64,000 nt of DNA from Macrostomum lignano (lineage: Eukaryota), in the NCBI GenBank assembly GCA_002269645.1, contig NIVC01002838.1, positions 1-64,000 on the forward strand, in the 5' to 3' direction. Of the stretch, positions 1,250-39,915 are shown piece by piece (within the stretch, counting starts at the first letter, position 1; each line of letters opens with the position of its first letter). The notes beneath the pieces were generated by a model that saw only the letters and a list, made by a program, of their open reading frames with translations, ran no database searches and was not told the origin of the DNA. The translations under genes were made by a program, and so were the position numbers.

Positions 1250-2251
1250 TCACACTCCAAAGAAAATTTTATTGATGGTTTCTTCCGGCAGATTCGTATT
1301 AGAAACGGCCACGGCTCTGACCAAACCTTGCAGCATGTAGTTGCCGTTGTACCGCCAGCCCACGTGGACGCAGGCTCCGGCTTGGTTGAAGCTGTTCGTC
1401 CGAGCGAAGACGCCGGCAGTCGGTAGAAACTTTGCTCCATAGAAGAAGCGAGTCAGGTTCTGCTGCCTCCTGAATGAGACGCCAGCGATGAAGAACTCGT
1501 TCGGGTCCGAAGGCAGCACCGAGCCGGTCTGGAATCTGGCGAAGTAGCCCGGGTTCAGGAAGATTGCGCGACTCACTCCGGTCATCACTGAGTACTCAGC
1601 GAGGTGGTCGAGCATGCTGCCGGATCCGATGCAGCTGCTCAGCTCCAGAAAGATTGCTTTACCTGGCGTTCTCTTTAGGTGCAGCACCCAGGTGTAGGAC
1701 GCCGTGAAGTCCAGACCTGTGGGGTCGTCCACCCACAGCCGAGACGAGACTCCGTCCATGCGAGCGCCTTCGTTCGTCCACGAGACACCGCTGGACTTCA
1801 TGGGGTTCCTTTGTCCCTCGGAGCCGCACACCAGGTTCTCCAGCGCCGGTCCCCTGTCTCCGACCCACACAGCGCTGAAGTGCTCGTTCGCAGCGATCGC
1901 GTCGTACTCCGAGTCCACCAAGGTCTCGCAGATGCTCTCAGCGGCCACTCCGGCAGTCGGTGTCGTCGAGGTCATGTTGAGCAGGTGGCACACCTCTCCG
2001 AAGCGGAACAGCGCGCACGAGGCGTCTCGCTTGTTCCGTTGCACAACGCCGACGCTGCCGAGACGGAGAGAGCGACTGGACGAGAAACAGTTGATCATTG
2101 AGGCCGAGGGCTGAGGCTTCTGCCACACCGCCAACGACAAGTTCAGGCACTTACGCTTTGACATTTTCAGCTTCGTGAATTGGGGGCTCTTTTGACCATT
2201 GCAGTCGAGTAGCAGGGCACTCAAAACTATTAAGAAGAAGACAGTATTCAT
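1250..2251 (-). CDS. Secreted PAN/apple-like + ConA-like (LamG) protein, paralog A1 (333 aa, single exon)
   Basis: Intact ORF with hydrophobic signal peptide MNTVFFLIVLSALLLDCNG. LamG-like motifs EGARMDGVSSRLWV..LDFTASYTW, CVHVGWR and GLVRAVAVSN. Four other intact paralogs in the window. Confidence 0.88.
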   Translation of the reverse strand: MNTVFFLIVLSALLLDCNGQKSPQFTKLKMSKRKCLNLSLAVWQKPQPSASMINCFSSSRSLRLGSVGVVQRNKRDASCALFRFGEVCHLLNMTSTTPTAGVAAESICETLVDSEYDAIAANEHFSAVWVGDRGPALENLVCGSEGQRNPMKSSGVSWTNEGARMDGVSSRLWVDDPTGLDFTASYTWVLHLKRTPGKAIFLELSSCIGSGSMLDHLAEYSVMTGVSRAIFLNPGYFARFQTGSVLPSDPNEFFIAGVSFRRQQNLTRFFYGAKFLPTAGVFARTNSFNQAGACVHVGWRYNGNYMLQGLVRAVAVSNTNLPEETINKIFFGV

Positions 2252-2454
2252 TACAAGTGTCTTTTTAAAGCTTTATACGAATGTTTGATTTTGCGTCTCA
2301 TGAAACTCAATTTCAAAATTCATTTATTCATAGGGACGGAACTCAGGATTTTTTTGCTGAAAATGTTCCGATTGGCTGAGACAGTTTGCAGCTATTTGTA
2401 GACCATGGACAGCTGAAGCACACAGCACTTCTGTTGTCCCTATAAATGAGATGA

Positions 2455-3330
2455 GACGTGAGGGGCAGGGGAGCTGGAGTGTGTGTTGCAATGGGCAGAG
2501 GAGCTGGAGTGTGTGTTGCAAGGGACAGGAGAGCTGGAGTGTGTGTTGCAAGGGACAGGAGAGCTGGAGTATGTGTTGCAAGGGACAGGAGAGCTGGAGT
2601 ATGTGTTGCAAGGGACAGGAGAGCTGGAGTGTGTGTTGCAAGGGACAGGAGAGCTGGAGTATGTGTTGCAAGGGACAGGAGAGCTGGAGTGTGTGTTGCA
2701 AGGGACAGGAGAGCTGGAGTGTGTGTTGCAAAGGACAGGAGAGCTGGAGTGTGTGTTGCAAGGGACAGGAGAGCTGCAGTGTGTGTTGCAAGGGACAGGA
2801 GAGCTGCAGTGTGTGTTGCAAAGGACAGGAGAGCTGCAGTATGTGTTGCAAAGGACAGGAGAGCTGCAGTGTGTGTTGCAAGGGACAGGAGAGCTGCAGT
2901 GTGTGTTGCAAGGACAGGAGAGCTGCAGTGTGTGTTGCAAAGGACAGGAGAGCTGCAGTATGTGTTGCAAAGGACAGGAGAGCTGCAGTATGTGTTGCAA
3001 AGGACAGGAGAGCTGCAGTATGTGTTGCAAGGGACAGGAGAGCTGCAGTATGTGTTGCAAAGGACAGGAGAGCTGCAGTGTGTGTTGCAAGGGACAGGAG
3101 AGCTGCAGTGTGTGTTGCAAGGGACAGGAGAGCTGCAGTGTGTGTTGCAAGGAACATGAGAGCTGCAGTGTGTGTTGCAAGGGACAGGAGAGCTGCAGTA
3201 TGTGTTGCAAGGGACAGGAGAGCTGCAGTGTGTGTTGCAAGGGACAGGAGAGCTGCAGTGTGTGTTGCAAGGGACAGGAGAGCTGCAGTGTGTGTTGCAA
3301 GGAACATGAGAGCTGGAGTGTGTGTTGCAG
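2455..3330. repeat. 30-bp minisatellite (GGGACAGGAGAGCTG[G/C]AGTGTGTGTTGCAA), ~29 units
   Basis: Tandem unit read directly. It explains the six repetitive ORFs at 2324-3483. Confidence 0.95.
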
Positions 3331-4199
3331 AAACTCACCATAGAGTGGAGAGCAGAGCAGCCAGCAGCCACGAATTTTAAGAAGAAGATTAAAGAAATTG
3401 CCCGAGAGTTGGTGACGCGCCAGCGACCACCGACTGTTTCCCGGCATCAGACACGCGTTATCAGTCACAACGGAGCACAGCAATAATTTATTTATTCAAG
3501 CGTCAATTGTATTCTTGCCAAGACAGTTCTCTGGAAAACCTACAGAGATGCAACAGCTTGCGAAACTCTCACGGAAGCCACTCGCTTGCAGGAATGCAGG
3601 AGCAGAGGCATGCATGAGTTGGGCTCACAAGCAAGATGCTGTGAAGCCTCATTGGCTTCTAACCCTCATCAAACATCCGCTGTGAAACCAAATTTGAGCC
3701 CAGCAGCTTCAAACGTAAAGACTTCGACGTTTTTTCGAAAATAAATTTTACCTAAAGCATTTTCAGAGAAAACTCAGCTCTAATGGGAAGCTAGAGTGCG
3801 TTGAAAATGATTAATAAACACCTGCATAGGTTTAGCACTAGCCGGGATAATTTTTATTATATAATCTTGTATTTATAAAAAAATAACCTCGTTGCAGATC
3901 TCCGTTGCAGATCACTTAATCAGAACTGGGACTCCGGCAAACCGTGGCCATAACAGCAACGTTTTCAAAAACCATGTAGGTCTGGGTAATGCATGGGTAC
4001 GGATACGCCAAAAGTTTTAGCAAAAAGCTGACTGCAAGCAAGAAACCGCTTAGTCACTCGCGACATTTTGTGCCCTATAAAGCCCCAAATTCAGGCCCTT
4101 AATGGCGCCGTGGTACTGATCCGAAGCCGGGATTTTCCATCTAACTAGTCCACGCTTAACGCCAACTTGTCAACAACAACAATACGAGCAACAACACCA

Positions 4200-5527
4200 G
4201 TGGGAAGGCACTCGTCTCCCCACCAAGAGAGAAGTCCGCTACATTGGCGTCTGGATAGACGATGGCCTTACCTTCAAGCGTCAGGCGGCCGAAGTTGTTT
4301 CGAAGATGCACCGCCGATGCAGCATCCTCCGCGCCCTGGCCCCCAGAGAGTGGGGCTGGGACTGCAGCACCCTCCGCACTGTCTACAAGGCAGTCGTCGA
4401 GTCCGTCGCTTGGCATGCGGCCGCGGCTTGGATGCCTTGGCTGCCCAAAACGCCGTTTGGAGGAGCTGGAGCGAGCACAGCGAGAAGCCCTAAGACTTGT
4501 TACCGGCCTGCCAAAGTTAAACTCCTGTGCGGCTGTCTATAAGGAGGCAAATTGCGATCCTATTAGCGCCGAGGCCAAACAGAGAGCCCTCACCGCCATT
4601 GAAAAGTCCAAAAGAAGACGGTTAGCAACACCTGGCGCCAGATTTGCGAGCGCGAAACCGATGTCCGCCTCAAAGCTAACCGGGGACTCCGTGAGCAAGC
4701 CAGCAAAATTCTGGCCAACCTCCTCCCGTTCGAGAGGCTGCCGAACTCCTGGATTCGTGCGCCCCAGGGGAGGCGCTTAATGGCTTGAAGCGACTCCGCC
4801 TCTTCCCCGAGCTCCTCCGCCACTGCAGCAAGTCCGAAGACATCCAGGCCAGGCGTGACCTCATCGAGGAGATCCGCAGAAAGTGCCTTCCGGACACCTG
4901 CTACTACAACGATGGATCAGCCACCAGCGGTACTCAGCTTGGCGGGGCGGCCTGGATACTGTACTGCAGCCGCCATGACCTGATCATTCGTTCGGGGCGT
5001 GCTGCGGCCTGCAGATGGTGCAGCTCCTTTGTAGCTGAGCTCCGGACCCTTTGACTGGCCCTGGGCGACATATTAACGGAAGAACCGCCGAAAGCAACAA
5101 TCCTGACTGACAGCCAGGCCGCCATCCGAGCCATCCAAGCCGACTGCACCACTACGAACAGCCTCCTAGAACACTCAAGAATCTCATCCGACGTGCTATC
5201 CGGGTCACAGCCATTACCATCCAGTGGATCCCTGGGCACGTGGGCGTTAGCGGAAATGAGCTGGTCGACCTGGAGGCCAAGCGGGCCGCGCGCCTGCCTC
5301 AACAGCACATCCCCCTTGCGCTTGCTGCGTCCAAGAACCTACTGCGCAGGTCCGTCGGGTACCAGCCCGTCCTTGAGGGCCACCTGGAAGCAGTTTACTC
5401 GGGGCGCATCACCTTCCATGATGGCACCAGAAACCAGAAAGTCCTAGTCTCGCAGGTCCGCGCCACTGCTGGCCACTGCCCGGCGTCGGTCTACTACAAG
5501 AAGCGCATCGGGACGACAAACGATGCT
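4200..5527 (+). mobile_element. Degenerate non-LTR retrotransposon fragment: RT C-terminus plus RNase H (I/Ingi/Loa-like), truncated at both ends
   Basis: Frameshifted translation gives EVRYIGVWIDDGLTF..LRALAPREWGWDCSTLRTVYKAVVES, then RNase H motifs YYNDGSA, FVAELRTL, ILTDSQAA, IQWIPGHVGVSGNELVDLEAK, then GHCP..YKKRIGT. Confidence 0.85.
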
Positions 5528-5867
5528 CCCCTGTCTCCGACCCACACAGCGCTGAAGTGCTCGTTCGCAGCGATCGCGTCGTACTCCGAGTCCACCACGG
5601 TCTCGCAGGTGCTCTCAGCGGCCACTCCGGCAGTCGGTGTCATCGAGGTCAAGTTGAGCAGGTGGCACACCTCACCGAAGCGGAACAGCGCGCACGAGGC
5701 GTCTCGCTTATTCCGTTGCACAACGCCGACGCTGCCGAGACGGAACGACCGACTCGACACGAAGCAGTCGAGCAGGAAGGCGGAGGGTCGCGGCAGTTGC
5801 CACACCGACAGCGACAAGTTCAGACACCCCTGATTGACTTCTTTATATTTAGTAATGCTGGAGAACT

Positions 5868-8800
5868 CCCGTCGAACTTTTCACCCGGAATTTCGCCCGG
5901 AATTTTTTGCGTTCACCCGGAATTTTTTCATATTCCAGTAATGCAATCCGATCCGGGTGGAAATTCCGGATCTGTAACGAAAGTTTACAGAATCCGGGCG
6001 AATTTTCCGGATCAAAAAGAAAAATTCCGGAAAATTGACCCGGATCAATAAAAAAATTCCGGTGACAGTTCCGGGCGAATTCCGGGCGAGTGAACCGGAT
6101 CTGCAGCCGAATCCGGGCTAATTCCGGGCGAGTGAACCGGATCAGCACACAATTCCGGGCGAGTGAACCGGATCAGCACACAAATCCGGGCTAATTCCGG
6201 GCGAGTGAACCGGATCAGCACACAATTCCGGGCGAGTGAACCGGATCAGCACACAATTCCGGGCGAGTGAACCGGATCAGCACACAAATCCGGGCGAATT
6301 CCGGGAGAGTGAACCGGATTAGCACACGAATCCAGGTGAATTCTGGATGATTGAACCGGTTTTTCAGCCAAATCTTGGGCTTATCACAGTAGCAGAAAAT
6401 TAAATAAAGAACGGGTCATTGTTCCATACATTTTCCACGACTACGAATAGAATCGAATTCGATTTAGCCGTCCACGAACAGAAATACTGAATTCAGTTGT
6501 GCACAACTGCAAATCGTATATTTCTATGCACTTCTACGTACTTTCAGAAACAAAAAATGCTGACCTTCTGAATGTCACTCGGATGGGCAGCTGGACTTCG
6601 ATGCTACCATTAACTTTTTTGAAGCCGTATACGGTTTTATATACCTTATCGCGACATTGGCTGCTCTTCAGGGATCCCCATCGCCTACCTCTGATTGCAT
6701 CTGTCAGGTGGGTCACTCACTATACAGCTAATTAGCTAGTTAACTCAAGTCAGCTGACTTGTCTATTCACTTGCTTAAGAATTGTAAAGATCTCCGCAAA
6801 AATTAAGGAACGACTTTTGTCTCATTTTCCAGGACCTATCAGGGCTCATAAATGTAGACAGCCAATGTCTCGAAGAGCGTTTCTAATGAAATCAAATCCA
6901 GCAAATTTGGCCTTAACAAAAAGCTAGAAATTAATTGCAAATAAATGCGGTGGTGGTGTTATGCACTCGATCTTGGACATCGCCCGCATTTCACTCCTCG
7001 AGTAGCTCGCCGTCTGGAAATATATGTTTCCAGAAGTCGGCCCCTCATTTTCGGCAGCACTGGCGATTCGTCGCGCCTTCACCTGGTCTTCTTTTGCCGC
7101 TCTGCGGCTGGCCGAGATTGAAAGAGCACTGCCTGGCTTCTCGCCACGGTCGTGTCGGATTCCGACGAGCTCGTAGCGGAGATACTTCCAACCGAAGAAC
7201 TTCAGCTTTCATCTGACGATTTTCGGCTTGAGCCTCCGACAGCTTTTCACGAACTCCGCTCAATTGATGGCCTATTAAGTACATAAAAATGAGGAGAGTG
7301 GCGAAGCAGATTCAAACTTAAGAATCGACAACACTTATATATATACGAGGCTGCTAACGTCTTCTAGTATATGCATAAAAAACTTACACAGTTCGTCCTC
7401 GGCTTCGCCTTGGGCCCGAATCTGATCCATCATTGTGGTGCATGACGGGCATCGTGACGGCTGCGGTTGCTGCGACGGCACACGCGCCAAAGCAGTCGCT
7501 TCAATCGCTTGGGCCTTTCTATCCAAAGGCCCCTTCCAGAGAGTGGCGGAATACCGGGATCCGGTACTCTTGTTAGCAGCCGTGACAACGTGATCTGCTC
7601 ACGGCTGGTGCAACTGCAAACGCCTTAGACAAACCAATGGAGCATGCACCGACAAAAATCGGATTAGCGTCTGTCTTAATAGGAAAGCTGCTTTGCATAC
7701 TGGGCCAGTTAGAGCTATTTGGAACTATGCCACAGTCTCCGTCTAGACACCCAGCTGTGCCAAACAATATGGTTGGCTGATTTTATGCTTCTAAGCGTCA
7801 AATATGACGATAGAATCATTCAGCCCGTTGACACACTAAGCAGCTGTGATAGACTACATGCCAGTGGAAGTCAAACCTCTTGCACGCAACAATTTTTCAA
7901 TTGTCACCTTCAATTGTACGGAGGATGGGCTCAGCCTCACATTACGGACGCTACAGTGCCGCCGTAAAGCAGATAAGTTGTCTCATCAAAGCGAGGCTTT
8001 ATTACCCCTCGCAGGTCAGCTTAGCAGCTGCCTTGAGCCACAACAGAAGCGAGGATTGATTATCCCTCGCAGGTCAGCTTAGCAGCTGCCTTGAGCCACA
8101 ACAGAAGCGAGGATTGATTATCCATCGCAGGTCAGCTTATCAGCTGCCTTGAGCCACAACAGAAGCGAGGATTGATTATCCATCGCAGGTCAGCTTATCA
8201 GCTGCCTTGAGCCACACGATATGGTTACCGACCATAGTAGTCCGTATAGACTACTCTAGACGTGATCTGCTCACGGCTGGTGCAACTGCAAACGCCTTAG
8301 ACAAACCACTGGAAGCATGTACCGACAAAAATCGGATTAGCGTCTATCCTAATAGGAAAGCTGCTTTGCATACTGGGCCAGTTAGAGCTATATGGAACCA
8401 TGCCACAGTCTCCGTCTAGACACCCAGCTGTGCCAAACAATATGGTTGGCTGATTTTATGCTTCTAAGCGTCAAATATGACGATAGAATCATTCAGACCG
8501 TTGACACACTAAGCAGCTGTGATAGACTACATGCCAGTGGAAGTCAAACCTCTCGCACACAATCAGGGCGCAACAATTTTTCAATTGTCACCCGTACGGA
8601 GGATGGGCACAGCCGCACATTACGGACGCTACAGAGCCGCCGAAAAGCAGATCAATTCACATTGCAATTTCGAGGCTTTATTACCCCTCGCTTTCCAAGA
8701 GGAAATAGCGCCGTTGACCGAATGGATGTCAGGGATTGCCTGATGGGATAGCCATTTGCTGGGGTCTGTATTCAGCGGTTTTCCATCGGAGGCTTCCTCT

Positions 8801-12318: not shown

Positions 12319-12487
12319 CGACAAACCATGTTTAGTATATGGATTCAAGACAAACTGAAAATAGTTATTTTCGAGCTTGGGCCACTTTACGCGTAGGCTT
12401 TTTCCATCAGTGACTCTAAAGCTAATAAGGCAATGTCCCCGGATAGTTGATTCTGGTTCTGGAAATCAATATAAAGTTATACTGGAA

Positions 12488-12666
12488 ACAGACACCGCGT
12501 CTCTCCTGTTAATAAACTTAATTCACAAAAGTGGCTTCAGAATGAGCTGGACGCCTCCTAATGATCCGCAATGGTCCAGCCCAATGAAGCGCTGAGCCCT
12601 GGGAGTTCTCTTCAGGTGCAGGACCCAGGTGCAAGACGCCGTAAGTTCCAGACCTGTGGGGCTGTC
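12488..12666 (-). pseudogene. Inverted, degenerate internal fragment of a B-type paralog
   Basis: Reverse complement translates DSPTGLELTASCTWVLHLKRTPRAQRFIGLDHCGSLGG, homologous to DDPTGLDFTASYTWVLHLKRTPRVQCFIELDNCESIGG of B3. An indel and a stop follow. Confidence 0.85.
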
Positions 12667-12970
12667 CTCAAATGAACAAGAAAAAGGTCTGCATTGTGTT
12701 TAACATATCCCTCTTGCTGATTTTATGAACTCAAGTGCTCGTTGCTTCAAAGTTAGGGCAACTCAAAAGAAATTGTAGCGTCAAGGTAAACAAGCCGTCA
12801 AAGTTAGCGACATGCTGCAAGAGCCAATGGGAAACCAAAACCAATCAGAACACCTCCACTGATCAGCAGAAAGTTAAAAACTTTGATGCGATCTGATGCC
12901 GAGGCTCTCCATACTGGCAGACTCCTCTTCTACTGACTGACAGAAGCTTACAATACATGTACGTCACAAA

Positions 12971-13984
12971 ATGTACAGCCTCCTACATCTCGCTGTTCTG
13001 TGCGCCCTGCTCTCGGTCTCTGACTGTGTGAACGGAGACAAAATTGCACAGCACAGAGTAGCCAACAATCACTGCGTGAACTTGTCGCTCTCGGTGTGGC
13101 GGCAGCCGCGACCCTCCGCCTCCCTGCTCGACTGCTTCGTGTCGAGTCGGTCGTTCCGTCTCGGCAGCGTCGGCGTGGTGCAGCGGAGCAAGCGAGACGC
13201 CTCGTGCGCGCTGTTCCGCTTCGGTGAGGTGTGCCGCCTGCTCAACATGACCAGCTCGTCTACACCGACTGAGGCAGTGGCCACTGAGAGCACCTGCGAG
13301 ACCGTGGTGGACTCGGAGTACGACGCGATCGCTGCGAACGAGCACTTCAGCGCTGTGTGGGTCGGAGACAGGGGACCGGCGCTGGAGAACCTGGTGTGCG
13401 GCTCCCAGGGACAGAGGAACCCCATGAAGTCGCTCAATGTGACCTGGACGAGTGAGGGCGCTCGCATGGACGGAGTCTCGTCTCGGCTGTGGGTGGACGA
13501 CCCCACAGGTCTGGACTTCACGGCGTCCTACACCTGGGTGCTGCACCTGAAGAGGACTCCTAAGGTTCAGTGCTACATTGAGCTGGACAATTGCGAATCA
13601 CTAGGAAGCTCAGTCTTAAGCCTCTTTTGGGAATTCAGCTTGATTACAGGAAAGACGCGATGTCTGTTTTTCTATACTGGCAGCCAAAACTGGCTCCAAA
13701 GCGGCTCTGTGCTGCCCGCTGACCCTGAGCGCTTCTTCATCACTGGCTTGACAACCGATAAGCCGTCGGGTGAACGCCGATTTCTGCTGGGATCCGCGTT
13801 CTTGACCGAGCCGCTGGTCTCTGGCAACGGTTCCAAATTTAATTATAACAATACTGGCGCCTGCATCAAGATCGGCTGGCCGTCTCCAGGCAAGTTCATA
13901 TTGAATGGCGTCATCCGCGCCGTCGCTGTGGCCAACTCGGCTGTGCCTGAGCAGGCGGTGCGACAGCTGCTTCAGCAGCCCTGA
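12971..13984 (+). CDS. Secreted PAN/apple-like + ConA-like (LamG) protein, paralog B1 (337 aa)
   Basis: Intact ORF, signal peptide MYSLLHLAVLCALLSVSDC, family core, and LamG-like C-terminus (CIKIGW, GVIRAVAVANSA). Confidence 0.88.
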   Translation: MYSLLHLAVLCALLSVSDCVNGDKIAQHRVANNHCVNLSLSVWRQPRPSASLLDCFVSSRSFRLGSVGVVQRSKRDASCALFRFGEVCRLLNMTSSSTPTEAVATESTCETVVDSEYDAIAANEHFSAVWVGDRGPALENLVCGSQGQRNPMKSLNVTWTSEGARMDGVSSRLWVDDPTGLDFTASYTWVLHLKRTPKVQCYIELDNCESLGSSVLSLFWEFSLITGKTRCLFFYTGSQNWLQSGSVLPADPERFFITGLTTDKPSGERRFLLGSAFLTEPLVSGNGSKFNYNNTGACIKIGWPSPGKFILNGVIRAVAVANSAVPEQAVRQLLQQP

Positions 13985-14930
13985 AGCTTTGGCTTGGTTG
14001 TTGTGAGAAGTTGAAAAATTAATAATTTGTTGCAACAATATTTTATTTGAGCTTTTAAGTTCTGTACGATTATCTGAACTGCTATATGTGCTTCTTTATG
14101 CGGCTATTTTACCCACTATCAAAAATGTATTTTAACGCTTTTAATTACAGATAGGGGCATAGCATAACAGATCTTTGTTTCTAACTTTCTTTCTTAAGCT
14201 CTGTCTAATTTCTCCCTCTTTTATTTAGAAGATTAAGCATATCTCTTGAGAGAGAGTTATTGGTATAAATTACAAGGGCCGATGGTGTTTTTGGTCATGA
14301 GAAGGCTTGTATTTCAGTCGCGTTGTGTTTTGAAGCAGTAACATTTCTGTAGTGGAAGATTTTCATTTGAATAACTATTTATTTACATATCATTATCAAT
14401 GCCTTAGATTTTTTAATAAAGGGCAAAGCTTTATCATTGCTATTGACAGCTCTTGACATGCTGTAAACCCAATATCTGCATGCGCTTTAATATGTACGGT
14501 ACTACGAAGTTGAGTTAAAAGTACTGCTGTAGCCTCGGTCTGAGCGCAGGAGCCAAATCCTTTTTTGTTTTACGTGGCTCCAGTGCTCGGGCCGGGGGTT
14601 TTAGACGCTGGCGGATCTGGTCTGATCTGATCTTTATCTCAATTATTGCCCCTATTTTTCTTTGGCGAGTCTGTAATCCTGTCTTTACATGCTCGTATCA
14701 CAAAGTGCCTTAGCGAACTTAGCTCTTTGCTATAGATAACAGTATGCTCCTATTGTCCTTATCTATTTATTTACTCTACGGAAGATTTATTGCGTCGTAA
14801 AAGAGCTCATGCGCAGAATTACTTTTTCTGTTTATTTTTCTCAATCATTAAAACCATCAACCGTTTCAATTTTGTGCTCGTAATTTATTTAATGACTTGC
14901 TGAACCTTACTTTTTGGTAATGAAGCAAAT

Positions 14931-16250
14931 GGAACCATTGACCAGTGTGAACCAGTGACCAGTGTAAACCAGTGACCAGTGTGAACCAGTGACCAGTGTG
15001 AACCATTGACCAGTGTGAACCAGTGACCAGTGTGAACCAGTGACCAGTGTAAACCAGTGACTAGTGTGAATCAGTGACCAGTGTGAACCAGTGACCAGTG
15101 TGAACCAGTGACCAGTGTGAACCAGTGACCAGTGTAAACCAGTGACCAGTGTGAACCAGTGACCAGTGTGAACCAGGGACCAGTGTGAACCAGTGACCAG
15201 TGTGAACCAGTGACCACTGTGAACCAGTGACCAGTGTGAACCAGTGACCAGTGTGAACCAGTGACTAGTGTGAATCAGTGACCAGTGTGAACCAGTGACC
15301 AGTGTGAACCATTGACCAGTGTGAACCATTGACCAGTGTGAACCAGTGACCAGTGTGAACCAGTGACCAGTGTGAACCAGTGACCAGTGTGAACCAGTGA
15401 CCAGTGTGAACCAGTGACCAGTGTAAACCAGTGACCAGTGCGAACCAGTGACCAGTGTGAACCAGTGACCAGTGTAAACCAGTGACCAGTGTGAACCAGT
15501 GACCAGTGTGAACCAGTGACCAGTGTGAACCAGTGACCAGTGTGAACCATTGACCAGTGTGAACCAGTGACCAGTGTGAACCAGTGACCAGTGTAAACCA
15601 GTGACCAGTGTGAACCAGTGACCAGTGTGAACCAGGGACCAGTGTGAACCAGTGACCAGTGTGAACCAGTGACCAGTGTGAACCAGTGACCACTGTGAAC
15701 CAGTGACCGGTGTGAACCAGTGACCAGTGTGAACCAGTGACCAGTGTGAACCAGTGACCAGTGTAAACCAGTGACCAGTGCGAACCAGTGACCAGTGAAA
15801 ACCAGTGACCAGTGTGAACCAGTGACCAGTGTAAACCAGTGACCAGTGTGAACCAGTGACCAGTGTAAACCAGTGACCAGTGAACCAGTGACCAGTGTGA
15901 ACCAGTGACCAGTGTGAACCATTGACCAGTGTGAACCAGTGACCAGTGTGAACCAGTGACCAGTGTGAACCAGTGACCAGTGTGAACCAGTGACCAGTGT
16001 GAACCAGTGACCAGTGTGAACCAGTGACCAGTGTGAACCAGTGACCAGTGTGAACCAGTGACCAGTGTGAACCAGTGACCAGTGTGAACCATTGACCAGT
16101 GTGAACCAGTGACCAGTGTAAACCAGTGACCAGTGTGAACCAGTGACCAGTGTGAACCAGTGACCAGTGTGAACCAGTGACCAGTGCGATCCAGGGACCA
16201 GTGTGAACCAGTGACCAGTGTGAACCAGTGACCAGTGTGAACCAGTGACT
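14931..16250. repeat. 17-bp minisatellite (ACCAGTGTGAACCAGTG), ~77 units
   Basis: Tandem unit read directly. The same unit recurs at 31185-31322. Confidence 0.95.
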
Positions 16251-21287: not shown

Positions 21288-21494
21288 AGCTTAATTTTTG
21301 TTTTGAGAAGTTTAAAAAGGAATAATTGTAATTTACATCATACGAGAATAATTATCTGAACTGTTTTATGTGTCTTTTTTAATAGTTATTTTACCCAGAT
21401 TGAAATTACGCTATATTTCTTTATAGTTCTTGCCTTATAGGTAGCTTGAAAACTATTATTTCTTTCCAACTCCGTCTTATTTCAGCATATTTTA

Positions 21495-22600
21495 CTAGCA
21501 ATCTACGCCCCCCGTTGGGGAGCCAAAGAAATGCAATACACGTTTTTTTAATAAGCTACATGTATCCTTGAAATCTTAAAAAAATCTCCTGTCAAACCTT
21601 GTAAGCCTTGACATGTCAGTAATTCCCCCCCACAAGCTTTAACTTATCAACTTCCCCCCTTGACATCACAGCAATGCCCCCAATAAGCCTTGGAAATCTA
21701 AAAACTGTCAACCTTCTAACCCTAACCCTAGCCTAACCCTAACCCTAACCCTAACCTAACATTGAAATTTCAGTAATTCTCTCTAAGAGTCATTATAGCA
21801 CTACTACAGCATTATAGCGATTCCCTGCAAGCCTCGACATCATAGGGATTCCCAAATGAATCTCTTAACTTCGACATGAAGCTTCTTTTATTTTTTACAT
21901 TACGCTTTTTTTATCAGCGATCCCTCCCCTGATGAGGCATCAAATAATGTAATAAAAAGTTTTCAATAAACTACATGTAGCTTCTGACTTTAGCCTTGAA
22001 ATCTCATTTATACCCCCGTGAGCCTTGAAATCTCAGCCATTCCCCCCATAAGCCTTGACATGTCAGCGATGGCCCCCATAAACCTTGAAATCTAAAAAAT
22101 CCCCTGTTATTCTGTTAACCTTGAAACCCGATAAAATATAACCCTCAACCCACACCTGACCTAAACCTAACTTTAACCCAACCTAAAGCCTTGAAATCTC
22201 AGCAATTCTTCTCCCCTAAGCCTTGAAATTTTAGTGATTCCTTCTTTAAGAATCACAGCACTATAACGATTTCCACCAAGCTTTGACATCGTAGCAATTC
22301 CCAAAGGAATCTTTTAACTTCGACATGACTTTTCTTTTATGTATACATAGTGCTACTTTTATTTTTTACATGACTCTTCTTCTATCAGCGACCCCCCCCC
22401 GTGGCGAGCCAAAGAATGCAATAAAAAAATTGAGTAAAGTACATGAACTTTGAAGTAGCTTCTGACTTTTGCTTTGACATCTCAGAACCCCCCCCCCCGT
22501 AATCTCAGTTATTCTCTGAGAGCCTTTACGTCTCAGTTTTTCTCCCCAGCACAGCATTATAGCTGCATTTAATTTTTACATGACACCCTTCATGTCTGAC
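21495..22600 (-). mobile_element. Helitron-like non-autonomous element (3' end at 21495), internally duplicated, with (CCCTAA)n-like tracts
   Basis: On the minus strand it ends in a hairpin (CCCCAACGGGG) about 13 nt before CTAG followed by T. A second copy lies at 63267-63650. It interrupts the B2 downstream region. Confidence 0.55.
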
Positions 22601-25600: not shown

Positions 25601-28600
25601 ATGATTGTTTACATGACGCTTCTATGATTTTTTACATGACGCTTCTATGATTTTTTTACATGACGCTTCTATGATTTTTTAATGACGCTTCATGATTGTT
25701 TACATGACGCTTCTATGATTTTTACATGACGCTTCTATGATTTTTACATGACGCTTCTATGATTGTTTACATGACGCTTCTATGATTGTTTACATGACGC
25801 TTCTATGATTTTTACATGACGCTTCTATGATTTTTACATGACGCTTCTATGATTTTTTACATGACGCTTCTATGATTGTTTACATGACGCTTCTATGATT
25901 GTTTACATGACGCTTCTATGATTTTTACATGACGCTTCTATGATTTTTACATGACGCTTCTATGATTGTTTACATGACGCTTCTATGATTGTTTACATGA
26001 CGCTTCTATGATTGTTTACATGACGCTTCTATGATTTTTAATGACGCTTCTATGATTTTTACATGACGCTTCTATGATTGTTTACATGACGCTTCTATGA
26101 TTTTTTACATGACGCTTCTATGATTGTTTACATGACGCTTCTATGATTGTTTACATGACGCTTCTATGATTTTTAATGACGCTTCTATGATTTTTACATG
26201 ACGCTTCTATGATTTTTACATGACGCTTCTATGATTTTTACATGACGCTTCTATGATTTTTACATGACGCTTCTATGATTGTTTACATGACGCTTCTATG
26301 ATTGTTTACATGACGCTTCTATGATTGTTCATATGACGCTTCTATGATTGTTTACATGACGCTTCTATGATTTTTAATGACGCTTCTATGATTTTTACAT
26401 GACGCTTCTATGATTTTTACATGACGCTTCTATGATTTTTTACATGACGCTTCTATGATTGTTTACATGACGCTTCTATGATTTTTACATGACGCTTCTA
26501 TGATTTTTTACATGACGCTTCTATGATTGTTTACATGACGCTTCTATGATTTTTTACATGACGCTTCTATGATTTTTACATGACGCTTCTATGATTGTTT
26601 ACATGACGCTTCTATGATTGTTTACATGACGCTTCTATGATTTTTTACATGACGCTTCTATGATTTTTTACATGACGCTTCTATGATTTTTACATGACGC
26701 TTCTATGATTGTTTACATGACGCTTCTATGATTGTTTACATGACGCTTCTATGATTGTTTACATGACGCTTCTATGATTTTTACATGACGCTTCTATGAT
26801 TTTTACATGACGCTTCTATGATTGTTTACATGACGCTTCTATGATTGTTTACATGACGCTTCTATGATTGTTTATATGACGCTTCTATGATTGTTTACAT
26901 GACGCTTCTATGATTTTTAATGACGCTTCTATGATTTTTACATGACGCTTCTATGATTGTTTACATGACGCTTCTATGATTTTTACATGACGCTTCTATG
27001 ATTGTTTACATGACGCTTCTATGATTGTTTACATGACGCTTCTATGATTGTTTACATGACGCTTCTATGATTGTTTACATGACGCTTCTATGATTTTTAC
27101 ATGACGCTTCTATGATTTTTACATGACGCTTCTATGATTGTTTACATGACGCTTCTATGATTTTTACATGACGCTTCTATGATTGTTTACATGACGCTTC
27201 TATGATTGTTTACATGACGCTTCTATGATTTTTACATGACGCTTCTATGATTGTTTACATGACGCTTCTATGATTGTTTACATGACGCTTCTATGATTGT
27301 TTACATGACGCTTCTATGATTGTTTACATGACGCTTCTATGATTGTTTACATGACGCTTCTATGATTTTTACATGACGCTTCTATGATTTTTACATGACG
27401 CTTCTATGATTTTTACATGACGCTTCTATGATTTTTACATGACGCTTCTATGATTGTTTACATGACGCTTCTATGATTGTTTACATGACGCTTCTATGAT
27501 TTTTACATGACGCTTCTATGATTTTTACATGACGCTTCTATGATTGTTTACATGACGCTTCTATGATTTTTACATGACGCTTCTATGATTTTTACATGAC
27601 GCTTCTATGATTGTTTACATGACGCTTCTATGATTTTTACATGACGCTTCTATGATTTTTACATGACGCTTCTATGATTTTTACATGACGCTTCTATGAT
27701 TGTTTACATGACGCTTCTATGATTTTTACATGACGCTTCTATGATTTTTACATGACGCTTCTATGATTTTTACATGACGCTTCTATGATTTTTACATGAC
27801 GCTTCTATGATTTTTTACATGACGCTTCTATGATTTTTACATGACGCTTCTATGATTTTTACATGACGCTTCTATGATTTTTACATGACGCTTCTATGAT
27901 TGTTTACATGACGCTTCTATGATTGTTTACATGACGCTTCTATGATTTTTACATGACGCTTCTATGATTTTTTACATGACGCTTCTATGATTTTTACATG
28001 ACGCTTCTATGATTTTTACATGACGCTTCTATGATTTTTACATGACGCTTCTATGATTTTTTACATGACGCTTCTATGATTTTTTACATGACGCTTCTAT
28101 GATTTTTTACATGACGCTTCTATGATCTTTACATGACGCTTCTATGATTTTTTACATGACGCTTCTATGATTTTTATATGACGCTTCTATGATTTTTACA
28201 TGACGCTTCTATGATTGTTTACATGACGCTTCTATGATTTTTACATGACGCTTCTATGATTTTTACATGACGCTTCTATGATTGTTTACATGACGCTTCT
28301 ATGATTGTTTACATGACGCTTCTATGATTTTTACATGACGCTTCTATGATTTTTACATGACGCTTCTATGATTTTTACATGACGCTTCTATGATTGTTTA
28401 CATGACGCTTCTATGATTGTTTACATGACGCTTCTATGATTTTTTACATGACGCTTCTATGATTGTTTACATGACGCTTCTATGATTGTTTACATGACGC
28501 TTCTATGATTGTTTACATGACGCTTCTATGATTTTTACATGACGCTTCTATGATTTTTACATGACGCTTCTATGATTTTTACATGACGCTTCTATGATTT

Positions 28601-29580
28601 TTACATGACGCTTCTATGATTTTTACATGACGCTTCTATGATTTTTACATGACGCTTCTATGATTTTTACATGACGCTTCTATGATTGTTTACATGACGC
28701 TTCTATGATTTTTACATGACGCTTCTATGATTTTTACATGACGCTTCTATGATTGTTTACATGACGCTTCTATGATTGTTTACATGACGCTTCTATGATT
28801 TTTACATGACGCTTCTATGATTGTTTACATGACGCTTCTATGATTGTTTACATGACGCTTCTATGATTTTTACATGACGCTTCTATGATTTTTACATGAC
28901 GCTTCTATGATTTTTACATGACGCTTCTATGATTGTTTACATGACGCTTCTATGATTGTTTACATGACGCTTCTATGATTGTTTACATGACGCTTCTATG
29001 ATTTTTACATGACGCTTCTATGATTGTTTACATGACGCTTCTATGATTGTTTACATGACGCTTCTATGATTGTTTACATGACGCTTCTATGATTTTTACA
29101 TGACGCTTCTATGATTTTTACATGACGCTTCTATGATTTTTAATGACGCTTCTATGATTTTTACATGACGCTTCTATGATTTTTACATGACGCTTCTATG
29201 ATTTTTACATGACGCTTCTATGATTTTTACATGACGCTTCTATGATTTTTAATGACGCTTCTATGATTTTTATATGACGCTTCTACGATTTTTATATGAC
29301 GCTTCTATGATTGTTGAAATGACGCATCTATGATTTTTATATGACGCTTCTCTGATTTTTTAAATGACGCTTCTATGATTGTTTACATGACGCTTCTATG
29401 ATTGTTTACATGACGCTTCTTTGATTGTTTACATGACGCTTCTATGATTGTTTACATGACACTTCTATGATTGTTTACATGACGCTTCTATGATTTTTTA
29501 AATGACGCTTCTATGATTGTTTACATGACGCTTCTTTGTTTTTTAAATGACGCATCTATGATTTTTACATGATGCTTCTT
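22600..29580. repeat. ~7-kb satellite of 22/23-bp units (CATGACGCTTCTATGATT[G]TTTA), ~300 units
   Basis: Tandem unit read directly. The edges are degenerate and the right-centre is more homogeneous. Confidence 0.97.
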
Positions 29581-30156: not shown

Positions 30157-30184
30157 TAGATAGATAGATAGATAGATAGATAGA
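30157..30184. repeat. (GATA)n microsatellite
   Basis: About 7 units. Confidence 0.9.
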
Positions 30185-31184
30185 TTTGGACATACATAGA
30201 TTTGGAGTGTTATGGACATACAAACCTTAGAGATTTAGTATATTTAGATAGCTGAGCAGTTTACTTGCTGGTTATCTGACTCGAACGTTGTCAAAGCTGT
30301 CGTAATTTATAACTGCATGTAGAACACAACAGACTGCTGCAATGTGGTTCCAAGAAGATGATGGTCCTTAGATATAGCAATAACCTTTCTATTTTGTTGA
30401 AGCAGAACTTTATTTATTAACTGTTTATTTACCTCAGTACCTTTATTTTTATTTGAAAAGTGGCAAACATTTTTGCTATTCTCTCTTCTCGACTTGTTGT
30501 AGGCCCAACTTCTCAATATTTTTGACAATATGAACCATAATACAGTTTAAATTTTCTTTTTCACCATTCAATCTTTTGCTGGCAATTTTTAGTTTTTATA
30601 CTCGTAAATTTTTGTACAACTCTTATAGCCTCAGTCTGGGGACAGGAAGCCCTTTTTGTTTGTGTGTGGCTTCTGTGCTTGGGGCTCGGGCCCTCTTTTT
30701 TGTTGCGCAACCGATTTGTCCTTGTTTTCCCTATGTGATTCTCGATGATTGCACCGGTTTTTCTCCGTTTTGCTTCTGTTGTTCACATATTCTATCTAAC
30801 GGACTCCCAGATTTGCGTCTTTGGCTGTCTGAATGCTTCAATCCAGTATAAATCCTCATTTTTCCTCACTTTCCCGGCGTGCGCCACGTGATAAATGTAG
30901 CTATAGAAACAGGTGAGTCTATAATCCTGTCTGTACATGCTTGCTTGTCTCACATGGGGTCTTAACGCACTTAGCTCTTTGCTAGAGATAAGTGTATGCT
31001 CTGATTGTATTAATTCATTAATTTACTTACTCTATACAGAAATAATTAAGAGCAAATGCACAGAATTATTTTTTACCTCCGTAATTACTGCCATCAACTG
31101 TTTCACCTTCGTACTCGTAATTTAATTATTATTGACTTGCTAAACCTTTTTGGTGATAAAGCATAGGGATCCTGTTGGAAGATG

Positions 31185-31322
31185 TGACCAGTGTGAACCA
31201 GTGACCAGTGTGAACCAATGACCAGTGTGAACCAATGAACAGTGTGAACCAATGACCAGTGTGAACCAGTGACCAGTGTGAACCAGTGACCAGTGTGAAC
31301 CAGTGACCAGTGTGAACCAGTG
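31185..31322. repeat. Short copy (~8 units) of the 17-bp ACCAGTGTGAACCAGTG minisatellite
   Basis: Same unit as 14931-16250, preceded by homologous flank (30620-31150 vs 14530-14920). Confidence 0.92.
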
Positions 31323-31719
31323 TCCTAATTTTCTGAACAAGAAGCAAATATATTTTGCGATTATACATAGCAAAAGTAGTGATCAATGAATATTAGAACA
31401 AAATGTTAATCAGCAATTAATGGAAGTCAATTGAAATTGACAAATTGCTGATAAAACCTCTGGTAACTCCGTCTTCTGTAGGGCTTTGAGGATGTACGCA
31501 TAAGAAGATATCAGTATCGTAGCTGACCTCCTAGACCAATTTATTGGCAAGTATAGCAGCTTAGCAAGATGCTGATTTAGGAAGCTGAAAAGTCGCCTGA
31601 CTACTAGGAGCTAGGAGCTATTTATAGCCAAATAAGCAGGAATGAGTTGCATATCAGCATGATTTCTTTTGATGCAAAAAGTGGTTTTTTTCAAAAAAAT
31701 ACTAATGATAATTGATTAC

Positions 31720-32521: not shown

Positions 32522-33553
32522 ATGTCAAGGCTCCTACATCTCACTGTTCTGTGCGCCCTGCTCTCGGTCTCTGACTGTGTGATCAGAGTCAAAACTACAC
32601 AGCACAGAGTAGTCAACAATGACTGCCTGAACTTGTCGCTGTCGGTGTGGCAGATGCCGCGAGCCTCCGCCTACCTGCTCGACTGCTTCGTGTCGAGTCG
32701 GTCGTTCCGTCTCGGCAGCGTCGGCGTGGTGCAGCGGAACAAGCGAGACGCCTCGTGCGCGCTGTTCCGCTTCGGTGAGGTGTGCCACCTGCTCAACTTG
32801 ACCAGCTCGTCTACACCGACTGAGGCAGTGGCCGCTGAGAGCAGCTGCGAAACCCTGGTGGACTCGGAGTACGACGCGATTGCTGCGAACGAGCAGTTCA
32901 GCGCTGTGTGGGTCGGAGACAGGGGACCGGCGCTGGAGAACCTGGTGTGCGGCTCCCATGGACAGAGGAACCCCATGAGGTCCAGTGGTGTCTCATGGAC
33001 GAACGAAGGCGCTCGCATGGACGGAGTCTCGTCTCGGCTTTGGGTGGACGACCCCACAGGTCTGGACTTCACGGCGTCCTACACCTGGGTGCTGCACCTC
33101 AAGAGAACTCCAAGGGTTCAGTGCTTCATCGAGCTGGACAATTGCGAATCAATAGGAGGCAGCTCATTCTTAAGCCACTTTTGGGAATATTGCCGTGGTT
33201 CATCAGAGACGCGATGTCTGTTTTCCAATATTGGCGACGATAAATGGGTGGTGCACACGGGCTCTGTGCTGCCCGCCGATCCTGAGCGCTTCTTTATCGC
33301 TGGCTTGTCAACAGATAAGCCGTCAGGTGAACGCCAATTTCTGCTTGGATCCGCGTTCTTGACTGAGCCCCTGAAATCTGGCAACGGGTCCACATTCAAA
33401 TATAACGACACTGGCGCCTGCATCAAGATCGGCTGGCGGGGTGCAAGCTCGCCATCGTTCAACGGATTTTTCCAGGGCGTCATCCGCGCAGTCGCCATGA
33501 CGAACTCAGCCGTGACTGAGCAGGTGGTGCGGCAGCTGCTTCAGCAGCCCTGA
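32522..33553 (+). CDS. Secreted PAN/apple-like + ConA-like (LamG) protein, paralog B3 (343 aa)
   Basis: Intact ORF with signal peptide and family core. Small insertions in the C-terminal loops. Confidence 0.88.
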   Translation: MSRLLHLTVLCALLSVSDCVIRVKTTQHRVVNNDCLNLSLSVWQMPRASAYLLDCFVSSRSFRLGSVGVVQRNKRDASCALFRFGEVCHLLNLTSSSTPTEAVAAESSCETLVDSEYDAIAANEQFSAVWVGDRGPALENLVCGSHGQRNPMRSSGVSWTNEGARMDGVSSRLWVDDPTGLDFTASYTWVLHLKRTPRVQCFIELDNCESIGGSSFLSHFWEYCRGSSETRCLFSNIGDDKWVVHTGSVLPADPERFFIAGLSTDKPSGERQFLLGSAFLTEPLKSGNGSTFKYNDTGACIKIGWRGASSPSFNGFFQGVIRAVAMTNSAVTEQVVRQLLQQP

Positions 33554-34804: not shown

Positions 34805-35380
34805 CGCGTCTCTAGGCGATAGCCCTCAAAACGTCACAACTTGCTTGGTCCGGGGCGCCAGCATCAATCAAAAGCCGGTCAGGGTATCTCGCCGTTCGCC
34901 CTTGGCCTCGGCTACGCGGTCCCTGCAGCTTGAGCAGCAGCACTTCGTTTAGTGGCTCAGGGCAAGTGGGCCTCCGACTGGCTGTCGTGGCCAACCAGTC
35001 GAAGTCGTCTCCCGCGCAGCAGGTCAGAAGGCCGCATCAGGCCTCGCATCGCTGCCTGGGCCGCTGCGCACGCCGAACGCCTCACTCAGCTTGGCCGCAT
35101 GCGCAGCGTCCAGCTGCCTCTTTTTCAGGTGTCCGTCAGGGTCCAGGTCTCGGCGTTGTACAACAAGACAGTCTCAACGACTGCCTGAAACAGCCGAGAC
35201 CCGAGCCCATCATCCAGGGCCTCAGAATGGAGCACGGAGCTCACAGAACGAACGAAGCATGATTGCATCCCCAGACAGCGTCTCGGTAATTGATATCGGA
35301 GGTCGGAGGGAACCGTGAAGACTACCGTCTTCCGCTCATTCAGCATGAGGCCGACTTGCAATGTTGACGCCGTCAGGCCA
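34805..35380 (-). mobile_element. 3' fragment of an RTE-clade non-LTR retrotransposon (degenerate)
   Basis: Translation contains RLFQAVVETVLLYNAETWTLT, LLRGRRLRLVGH and CPEPLNEVLLLKLQG..RGQGRTARYPD, typical of the RTE RT C-terminus. Frameshifts and stops present. Confidence 0.75.
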
Positions 35381-38300: not shown

Positions 38301-38913
38301 GCGCCCTAATACGAGTTCCTTTTCGACAGCTACCTGTTCTATCGGTTGACTCTGTTATGGAATGAAAGCAATTGAAACTCCTCCATTCAAGAACGGCTGA
38401 TTTAGGCCCCAATCACCTTGACAACAAGGTAAGGTAAGAAGGATGTATATTTTAATTTTGACTCTGAAAAGCCTTTGATAGAGCTTCCATCCTGAAATTT
38501 TAATTTAAAATTATTGATAAAGCCGAGAAAAAATAAACCGGGTCTACAATAAGCAATTAAACAATAAAGCTGATATTTAAAAGTTTATTTATGGCGTTCA
38601 TATATTACAGCAAGTCTGTAGGTACACAAGACTATTTAATTAACAGCATCACGGACGGGTAGCTATTTTTTGCAAGGAACGGTCTCGATCGTTTGATGTT
38701 AAAATGTTTAGAAAATTCATATAGATACTCGTAAAAGCAAAGATAAAAAAGCGTTCCTGGGCTCATGAAAAATTCAAAAATGTCGGGAAAACTTGAACAA
38801 AATTAACTTTAACTGGAAATAGATCTTTCCAGAGGGAGTTGGTATAACTGATATTTATTTCAAAAAATAGTTGTTCATAACCTTTTGTTAATTCCTGACG
38901 TTTTACAATCAAT

Positions 38914-39915
38914 TTACACTCCGAAGAAAATTTTATTGATGGTTTCTTCCGGTAGATTCGTATTAGAAACCGCCACGGCTCTGACCACACCATAAAGCAT
39001 GAAGGTGCCGTCATACCGCCAGCCCACATGGATGCAGGCTCCGGCTTGGTTAAAGCTGTTCGTCCGAGCGAAGACGCCGGCAGTCGGTAGAAACTTTGAT
39101 CCATAGAAGAAGCGAGTCAGGTTCTGCTGCCTCCTGAATGAGACGCCAGCGATGAAGAACTCGTTCGGGTCCGCAGGCAGCACCGAGCCGGTCTGGAATC
39201 TGGCGAAGTAACCCGGGTTCAGGAAGAGGGCGCGACTCACTCCGGACATTACTGAGTACTCTTGCAGGTGGTCGAGCATGCTGCCGGATCCGATGCAGCT
39301 GCTCAGTTCTAAAAAGCTAGCTAAACCTGGCGTTCTCTTCAGGTGCAGCACCCAGGTGTAGGATGCCGTGAAGTCCAGACCTGTGGGGTCGTCCACCCAC
39401 AGCCAAGACGAGACTCCGTCCATGCGAGCGCCCTCACTCGTCCAGGTCACATTGAGCGACTTCATGGGGTTCCTCTGTCCCTCGGAGCCACACACCAGGT
39501 TCTCCAGCGCCGGTCCCCTGTCTCCGACCCACACAGCGCTGAAGTGCTCGTTCGCAGCGATCGCGTCGTACTCCGAGTCCACCACGGTCTCGCAGGAGCT
39601 CTCAGCGGCCACTCCTGCAGTCGGTGTCGTCGAGGTCATGTTGAGCAGGCGGCACACCTCACCGAAGCGGAACAGCGCGCAGGAGGCGTCTCGCTTGTTC
39701 CGCTGCACCACGCCGACGCTGCCGAGACGGAGAGAGCGACTGGACGAGAAACAGTTGATCATTGAGGCCGAGGGCTGAGGCTTCTGCCACACCGCCAAAG
39801 ACAAGTTCAGGCACTTACGCTTTGATATTTTCAGCTTCGTGATTTGGAGGCTCTTTTGAGCATTGCAGCTGACTAGCAGGGCACTCAAAACTATTAAGAA
39901 GAAGACAGTATTCAT
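38914..39915 (-). CDS. Secreted PAN/apple-like + ConA-like (LamG) protein, paralog A2 (333 aa)
   Basis: Intact ORF. Start placed at ATG 39915 (MNTVFF...) by alignment with A1, not at 39996 as in the ORF track. Confidence 0.88.
   Translation of the reverse strand: MNTVFFLIVLSALLVSCNAQKSLQITKLKISKRKCLNLSLAVWQKPQPSASMINCFSSSRSLRLGSVGVVQRNKRDASCALFRFGEVCRLLNMTSTTPTAGVAAESSCETVVDSEYDAIAANEHFSAVWVGDRGPALENLVCGSEGQRNPMKSLNVTWTSEGARMDGVSSWLWVDDPTGLDFTASYTWVLHLKRTPGLASFLELSSCIGSGSMLDHLQEYSVMSGVSRALFLNPGYFARFQTGSVLPADPNEFFIAGVSFRRQQNLTRFFYGSKFLPTAGVFARTNSFNQAGACIHVGWRYDGTFMLYGVVRAVAVSNTNLPEETINKIFFGV

Follow-up and report, generated by a model that had tools for sequence, protein, structure and literature searches.

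The first 64,000 nucleotides of contig NIVC01002838.1 of the flatworm Macrostomum lignano (assembly GCA_002269645.1, forward strand; the whole stretch is called the window here) carry a cluster of genes for putatively secreted proteins, which appear to be restricted to Macrostomum and are predicted to adopt a concanavalin A-like (ConA-like) fold. The genes are nearly identical to each other over an internal tract of about 405 bp, the core, and differ strongly at both ends. We consider it probable that recurrent interlocus gene conversion or ectopic recombination homogenizes this core across old subfamilies. The evidence comes from synonymous sites, from variants and hybrid copies that cross the subfamilies, and from a second organism in which the same layout recurs.

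The gene copies

A preliminary description of this DNA, made from its letters alone, had reported five intact copies and two broken ones. A listing of the open reading frames (ORFs) of the window and a BLAST of the genes against it find the same copies at the same positions. The intact copies (A1, A2, B1, B2, and B3) are intronless ORFs of two subfamilies, A and B, and the broken ones are a pseudogene, C, and a B-like fragment. From A1 to A2 the copies spread over 39 kb, on both strands. In the following list, the core is the tract from RLGSVG to HLKRTP (404-407 alignment columns, residues 63-197), and the cassette is a segment of the core that occurs in two states.

1250-2251, minus strand: A1, intact gene, 333 amino acids (aa); core 1664-2065; cassette 1766-1795, state SSGVSWTNEG
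2252-2441, minus strand: 5' flank of A1, common to A2 (to 40129); CCAAT box AGCCAATCGG
~5518-5856, minus strand: pseudogene C (blastn, tblastn, and translation), a B-type N-terminal segment plus an A-type mid-core patch, without signal peptide
~12432-12667, minus strand: B-like fragment, decayed and frameshifted, core end plus start of the C-terminal part, ~80% identity to the intact copies
12971-13984, plus strand: B1, intact gene, 337 aa; core 13157-13561; cassette 13430-13459, state SLNVTWTSEG with an NVT sequon
19731-20273, plus strand: 5' flank of B2, common to B3 over ~540 bp and to B1 over ~235 bp (self-BLAST and site patterns); 2 CCAAT boxes
20274-21287, plus strand: B2, intact gene, 337 aa; core 20460-20864; cassette 20733-20762, state SSGVSWTNEG
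32522-33553, plus strand: B3, intact gene, 343 aa; core 32708-33112; cassette 32981-33010, state SSGVSWTNEG
38914-39915, minus strand: A2, intact gene, 333 aa from the MNTVFF ATG; core 39328-39729; cassette 39430-39459, state SLNVTWTSEG

B3 has a 4-codon insertion in its last loop. Each intact gene has a 5' flank of ~190-540 bp that is kept within its subfamily and carries CCAAT boxes; in a self-BLAST, 1249-2441 is 88.5% identical to 38913-40129. On the other side, similarity between copies stops 1-43 bp past the stop codon. Intact ORFs and conserved CCAAT-bearing flanks are signs, read from the sequence, of working genes.

The homology of pseudogene C breaks off at 5527, within the core, where it is abutted by a stretch at 4167-5527 (plus strand). 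This region is GC-rich (58% in 4001-6000). The stretch probably marks an insertion that truncated the pseudogene. The start of the ORF at 5240-5833 (...GVSGNELVDLEAKRAA) has, as we read it, a resemblance to the C-terminal RNase H motif of a retroelement; Pfam confirmed no domain in it.

A homogenized core between diverged ends

Nucleotide identity between A and B is 59-60% on the 5' side of the core, 91-96% within it, and 45-50% on the 3' side, which agrees with the earlier impression of ends that barely align around a nearly identical middle. Is it the protein that is conserved here, or the DNA? When A is compared with B, synonymous divergence (dS, Nei-Gojobori) amounts to 1.07-1.25 for the N-terminal part, and C-terminal values run from 1.8 up to saturation. 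The core has 0.085-0.18, not above the values found within subfamilies; the flanks have a dS of 0.02-0.30 within a subfamily.

The same result is obtained by looking only at positions where A and B have the same amino acid. The codon differs at 70 of 145 such positions in the N-terminal part and at 179 of 311 in the C-terminal part, as opposed to 57 of 700 in the core, that is, 48-58% in the flanks versus 8% in the core (Fisher p = 4e-10 to 2e-16 per pair). Because codons for the same amino acid also mostly match in the core, and about half of them do not in the flanks, the identity of the core is not due to selection at the level of the protein. Codon bias is ruled out as its source as well, since 92% of these core codons are identical when core codon usage alone would lead us to expect 54%.

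The GC content of third codon positions (GC3) is 0.79-0.84 in the core versus 0.64-0.72 in the C-terminal part, and the core is higher in 5 of the 5 genes. This is what GC-biased conversion predicts. Ratios of nonsynonymous to synonymous divergence (dN/dS) are 0.21-0.44 in the core (0.39-0.44 within B) and 0.54-0.92 in the B C-termini. Every copy carries private substitutions in the core, and the core phylogeny is star-like. Judging from these comparisons, it is most likely that exchange of DNA between copies keeps the core of about 400 bp nearly identical, while the ends have diverged to saturation.

Mosaic sites, a two-state cassette, and hybrid copies

Exchange between copies should also leave mosaics. 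The core has 19 informative sites. Ten of them belong to a single 25-bp cassette, which separates A2 and B1 from A1, B2, and B3; five support the A|B split; and four are single sites, each with a different grouping. Four of the five A|B sites are inside a 17-bp patch (columns 289-305) and the other one is at the 3' boundary. The patch adjoins a 3-bp A/B indel (columns 282-284) and falls in a Ser/Thr/Pro-rich linker, modeled with low confidence. The informative sites define 6 distinct bipartitions, and 80 of 171 pairs of sites fail the four-gamete test. Incompatible sites are clustered by a permutation test similar to the pairwise homoplasy index (p = 0.003 for the 3 nearest neighbors and 0.011 for 5, with no signal for 10, p = 0.67), although all these tests rest on the 5 intact sequences from this genome and have limited power.

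The preliminary description called the core shuffled. This stands insofar as variants cross the subfamilies, but more than half of the informative sites (10/19) amount to one cassette, and the 17-bp patch has stayed diagnostic of A versus B. The two shared strings that it pointed out are exact: the one coding for SLNVTWTSEG is the same in A2 (39421-39465) and B1 (13426-13465), and the one coding for SSGVSWTNEG is the same in A1 (1761-1803) and B2 (20728-20765).

Three copies are hybrids. Pseudogene C joins a B-type LLDCFVSSRSF to an A-type TPTAGVAAES, as had been noticed before. The other two are M. lignano proteins in UniProt: A0A1I8H0C0 (P0002) is B-type at its N-terminus and A-type at its C-terminus, and A0A1I8IQ62 (P0001) has the nearly identical core flanked by a third kind of ends. 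One of these two proteins has a B-type leader that, by our own count over about 76 residues, is ~93% identical to that of B2. Together with the nearly identical cores of both proteins, this leader indicates M. lignano or a very close relative as the source of the window. The B copies also change partners along their length. From -400 to -235 upstream, B2 equals B3 at 74 of 87 variable sites; in nucleotides 591-800, B1 equals B2 at 26 sites, versus 11 and 8 for the other two pairings; and 800-1014 is mixed. Homogenized synonymous sites, variants that cross subfamilies, and hybrid copies are together the signature of ectopic gene conversion, which the preliminary description had proposed, or of ectopic recombination.

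Relatives and a second organism

Searched in full with HMMER, 1.84 billion representative proteins yield 25 relatives. A word-indexed homology search had reported 1, and its profile version 11. The relatives that were checked are all either M. lignano records or short metagenome and metatranscriptome contigs of the Joint Genome Institute (JGI). Exact-sequence look-ups of P0001, B1, A1, and B2 matched no contig. Literature searches on Macrostomum together with gene conversion, concanavalin A-like, seminal fluid, or the accessions found no description of the family, and it matches no described family by Pfam or PDB sequence searches either, in keeping with the earlier statement that it was not recognized. 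The family would be lineage-restricted, apparently to Macrostomum.

Five of the JGI contigs (L001-L005, samples 3300040801 and 3300040776) come from paralogs of a different, related organism, with ~27% identity to B1. These paralogs share a nucleotide-identical stretch that spans VWVMSDDEDASKSNLVCNGQTQQWQA and AKFDGTSSKMTLENVNF, and their divergence is saturated past L-x-K-R: codons for the same amino acid differ at 78 of 475 positions in the core, and at 238 of 414 after it. GC3 is again higher in the core (0.60-0.72 vs. 0.43-0.51 in the C-terminal part). At the homologous position there is a two-state cassette, SGVEWTKEG or VNVTFTSEG. All of the contigs L001-L004 start inside the core, where an assembler would be expected to break if it met a repeat. 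Since the second organism has the same layout, with a two-state cassette at the same position, the pattern of the core is a lasting property of the family.

Two positions of the cassette co-vary across 31 members of at least three subfamilies, which are phylogenetically non-independent: 14 have G and a residue other than S, 13 have N and S, and 4 have neither combination, two of them because the first site is Asp, the other two being G/S and N/non-S. The N...S state is often an N-x-T sequon. From this co-variation it would follow that the dimorphism is old and has been re-assorted among the copies.

In the second organism (L001-L005; P0004, P0027, and P0030), the signal peptide MHHALILHCLISGHALLALVCLVQLANCDS is constant and is followed by alternating variable and constant blocks, a finer mosaic than that of the window. 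Among the M. lignano records, the UniProt names "Peptidase S1" (P0001, A0A1I8IQ62), "UBC core" (P0005, A0A1I8H4S8), and "Ricin B-type lectin" (P0017, A0A1I8F1L1) are apparently unsupported; P0005 and P0017 have no such domain in a Pfam scan, and P0001 was judged from the window proteins with the nearly identical core. A trypsin-like reading of "GDRGPAL", suggested by the UniProt name, was rejected: the position is wrong, Pfam does not support it, and the predicted fold is a different one. Several other M. lignano relatives look like fused or chimeric gene models (for instance with clathrin, SPATA6, or P450).

A predicted ConA-like fold

Every protein has a hydrophobic N-terminal leader and invariant NLS and NMT/NLT sequons. 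After the leader, 7 cysteines are conserved in all 5 copies, to which the B copies add 3 or 4. From these features we infer a secreted protein of ~335 aa with predicted N-glycosylation sites. It would consist of a signal peptide, a Cys-containing N-terminal region of ~100 aa, and, in the structural model, a ConA-like/LamG-type beta-sandwich at about residues 155-333.

Sequence comparison says little about the fold. A Pfam scan of the 5 window proteins gives 0 matches at E<=1. A PDB sequence search with them gives no match, and a profile search of the PDB gives one match at chance level (E 1.7). The closest Pfam family is Laminin_G_3 (PF13385), with a gathering score of 27.6 bits; that curated cut-off is reached by no window protein, nor by the relatives P0007 and P0008 (18-20 bits). 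Sub-threshold matches (E<=1) are present in 9 of 27 members, with a best E-value of 1.2e-5, and they span the whole profile; one JGI relative has a precomputed PF13385 match. By our own reading, the motifs EGAxxDG...FTWLLxLKRxP near the start and G.I/V.R.V...N....T..E near the end resemble those of LamG_3.

An AlphaFold2 model built from a 27-sequence alignment has a predicted local distance difference test (pLDDT) of 77.7 and a predicted template modeling score (pTM) of 0.73; a run on 6 near-identical sequences was unusable (pLDDT 30). When the model is compared to the PDB with Foldseek, there are 188 matches at E<=0.001, and the top ones are all ConA-like (E ~1e-6, probability 1.00). They include the lectin-like domain of trans-sialidase, BoNT/NTNHA Hc-N, domain 4 of AbnA (template modeling score 0.71), and the LNS domain of neurexin. 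Leaders in the sequence and a predicted ConA-like lectin/LamG jelly roll thus favor the secreted lectin-fold paralogs of the preliminary description. The lectin fold is a prediction, and lectin activity is at most putative.

In the model, the core covers the Cys-containing N-terminal region and only the first strands of the sandwich, so that the homogenized tract appears to be a tract of DNA, and not a structural domain of the protein. The earlier picture of a constant core with a variable binding face is not supported: the core is no structural unit, and the variable residues of the B C-termini show just a trend toward predicted loops (odds ratio 2.0, p = 0.07). We also weighed the idea that HLKR|TP is a dibasic processing site, and dropped it, as the model puts this motif in a beta strand; in our reading of the alignment, it presumably corresponds to the "fTvsaWvkp" strand of LamG_3-type domains.

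A proposed model of segmental conversion

The reading that we favor, and which we hold to be probable, is that of a clustered, lineage-restricted family of secreted ConA-like proteins with a core that is homogenized across old subfamilies. A, B, and the third type seen in UniProt would be such subfamilies, their ends saturated at synonymous sites. Recurrent interlocus conversion or ectopic recombination would hold the internal tract of ~405 bp nearly identical across them, and conversion tracts would end where flanking identity becomes too low for heteroduplex formation. Because low flanking identity stops the tracts, the boundary of the core would maintain itself. Exchange within a subfamily would extend further, to the 5' flank, the leader, and some of the 3' half, which would produce the mosaic relationships of the B copies. 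The same process would have moved between copies the ancient two-state cassette, which corresponds to the first hairpin of the sandwich (G...N/K/E vs. N...S). The divergent two-thirds of the sandwich would set the specificity of a putative ligand-binding role. The recognition, immune, adhesive, or toxin roles that the preliminary description had offered are likewise putative. In the preliminary description, conversion was the source of diversity. The reverse seems to hold: in the core conversion would homogenize, and diversity is found where cross-subfamily conversion does not reach.

Several observations weigh against this model. Conversion is read from sequence patterns, and no event has been seen directly. 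Once the cassette and the A|B sites are taken away, the core is left with 4 informative sites, all with different bipartitions, and recurrent mutation could account for some of them. The pairing of A1 with B3 by CHLL plus CETLV, which had been taken as a shared variant, is weak at the level of nucleotides: CHLL comes down to one shared nucleotide (column 266), and for the Leu of CETLV, A1 has TTG where B3 has CTG (column 334), so CETLV is not a shared tract. A few past exchanges followed by duplication could yield much of the pattern in the window. The JGI contigs may be transcripts, in which case identical 5' parts could be splice forms of one locus. As for the fold, it is a prediction from a shallow alignment, with PF13385 below its cut-off in relatives and absent for the window proteins.

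A bolder version of conversion-driven evolution, and one to which we give little probability, takes the core to be a selected recombination handle by which leaders, the hairpin cassette, and modules of the sandwich are re-assorted among loci, possibly somatically or in populations. If true, the hermaphroditic flatworm would thereby obtain a varied set of binding proteins, for use in immunity, in recognizing gametes or partners, or in seminal-fluid conflict, and the layout would have been kept since before the split from the second organism.

Alternative explanations

The pattern could have a one-off chimeric origin, in which the core was replaced or fused a single time and the copies then duplicated and diverged in the ordinary way, without continuing exchange. 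The core dS among all five copies is indeed of the same order as the within-subfamily dS of the flanks, the tree of the core is star-like, private substitutions being numerous, and the A/B-diagnostic patch persists within the core. But support for the A|B split is confined to that patch and the boundary site. A single event also has to face a cassette and three independent hybrid copies that cross the subfamilies, and B copies that are themselves mosaic. Moreover, the architecture and the raised core GC3 are found in the second organism too, and the same accident would be needed twice. We regard a one-off origin as unlikely.

Synonymous sites can also be conserved, copy by copy, when the DNA or RNA does more than encode the protein, for instance when it holds an overlapping ORF on the other strand, folds into a structured or regulatory RNA, or is targeted by small RNAs. 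That synonymous sites are conserved here is what such a constraint would look like, and in all the copies two antisense frames run through the full core without a stop. The antisense ORFs, of 133-187 aa, are:

1679-2114, opposite to A1
12983-13546, opposite to B1
20270-20849, opposite to B2
32534-33072, opposite to B3
39343-39778, opposite to A2

However, antisense frames this long appear in 22-83% of synonymous-codon shuffles. Composition predicts them, they are no evidence for overlapping genes, and we reject the antisense hypothesis. No Rfam family matches the window. The cores differ by 4-9% between copies, largely at synonymous sites, and a nucleotide constraint leaves unexplained the cross-subfamily variants, the hybrids, and the tolerance of two very different states of the cassette. 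We give this explanation only a small chance.

An artifact of assembly or polishing, by which multi-mapping reads made the core consensus chimeric or homogenized, comes to mind in a highly repetitive genome with minisatellites between the copies. Short-read polishing could in principle swap mosaics as small as the 25-bp cassette, and as the source of the small mosaics an artifact is possible. As the source of the main signal it is unlikely, and overall we put it as very improbable: polishing cannot create a 400-bp tract between flanks that are ~50% identical, each copy has private substitutions in the core, the core occurs with other ends in independently produced M. lignano protein models, and contigs of another organism have the same architecture.

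Finally, purifying selection alone, on a core that would be an essential domain with ends free to vary, has in its favor the lower dN/dS of the core in comparison with the B C-termini and the fact that the core amino-acid motifs are the best kept in distant relatives, but as the sole cause it is refuted by the dS, codon-identity, and codon-usage results, an A-B core dS ~10x below that of the flanks being something that selection on the protein cannot produce, and we leave it next to no probability. Such selection probably acts on the core in addition, without being the cause of its nucleotide identity.

Surroundings in the window

The window is rich in minisatellites, and four large arrays interleave the paralogs:

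2461-3329: 30 bp x 29; begins ~210 bp upstream of the A1 start codon
9626-10658: 21 bp x 49
14932-16249: 17 bp x 78
22599-29579: 23 bp x 309 (~7 kb)

These arrays could favor ectopic pairing or breaks near the genes.

Two pairs of dispersed repeats, at 76-86% identity, are probably unclassified interspersed elements: 21494-21882 (downstream of B2) pairs with 63266-63653, and 14664-15096 (downstream of B1) with 30912-31325. An intact ORF of 671 aa at 45722-47737 (minus strand), with a BED zinc finger and a hAT C-terminal dimerization domain (E 3e-12), is a hAT-family transposase or a domesticated ZBED-like gene. At ~60300-60593 (plus strand), following a 34-bp tandem array, the end of an ORF matches the first ~57 positions of the Peptidase_C14 caspase domain (E 7e-6) and probably represents the first coding exon of a caspase gene.

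Significance

A family of putatively secreted and apparently Macrostomum-restricted proteins receives a predicted ConA-like/LamG fold. As a clean case of segmental concerted evolution, in which the genes are intronless, the boundaries are sharp, and both the tract and the cassette are kept in two organisms, it can be used to ask what limits conversion tracts, and whether the 3' part is kept beyond their reach by selection. Should the proteins turn out to be effectors of reproduction or immunity, they would offer a workable model of paralog diversification in a laboratory flatworm. On the practical side, short-read assemblies break at the shared core, and gene models are confused by it.

Comparison with known systems

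It is well known that venom and immune families can pair a conserved 5' part with a 3' part that is hypervariable. As an example, conotoxin superfamilies (taken from general knowledge) have a 5' part conserved at silent sites and a fast-diverging 3' part, which encodes the interaction surface of a secreted protein. In conotoxins the parts are separate exons and the conserved one is the signal and pro-peptide, whereas the genes of the window are intronless, with a divergent leader and an internal conserved part, and there is no sign of toxicity.

The preliminary description had mentioned two invertebrate immune families, Sp185/333 (SpTransformer) of sea urchins and the fibrinogen-related proteins (FREPs) of snails. 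They are likewise clustered, secreted, lineage-specific paralogs with patchwork sharing of blocks, but they have no sequence or fold relationship to the window family, and a Pfam scan of the window proteins found no domains of either type. Sp185/333 is made of elements that are present or absent and is largely disordered, and FREPs combine immunoglobulin superfamily and fibrinogen domains and diversify somatically, features that are not seen here.

At the level of the fold, the family resembles the ConA-like superfamily, including PF13385, by its predicted sandwich at ~155-333, by jelly-roll matches in Foldseek, and by the sub-threshold PF13385 matches of its relatives. It departs from that superfamily in staying below the Pfam threshold, in having no PDB sequence match, and in its extra N-terminal region of ~100 aa with cysteines; the sugar- or Ca-binding residues of the superfamily were not identified in the window proteins. 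The best structural match is the C-terminal lectin-like domain of the Trypanosoma cruzi trans-sialidase (E 9.5e-7). The T. cruzi trans-sialidases are a large surface or secreted family with recombination between members. The likeness is of the fold only, since the identity is 11-13%, the window proteins do not have the sialidase beta-propeller, and neither the organism nor its biology is related.

A parallel in mechanism is the partial concerted evolution of duplicated genes such as the human G-gamma/A-gamma globin pair or opsin and RH genes (again from general knowledge), in which a sharply bounded tract with raised GC is homogenized down to its synonymous sites and the remainder of the duplicates diverges. 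Here, on the other hand, the flanks are saturated, there are at least 5-7 copies over 39 kb on both strands, and the same tract is found in a second organism. Segmental conversion with sharp boundaries was thus already known, and so was the fold superfamily. What is new is the family itself, and the persistence of its converted tract and two-state cassette in two organisms.

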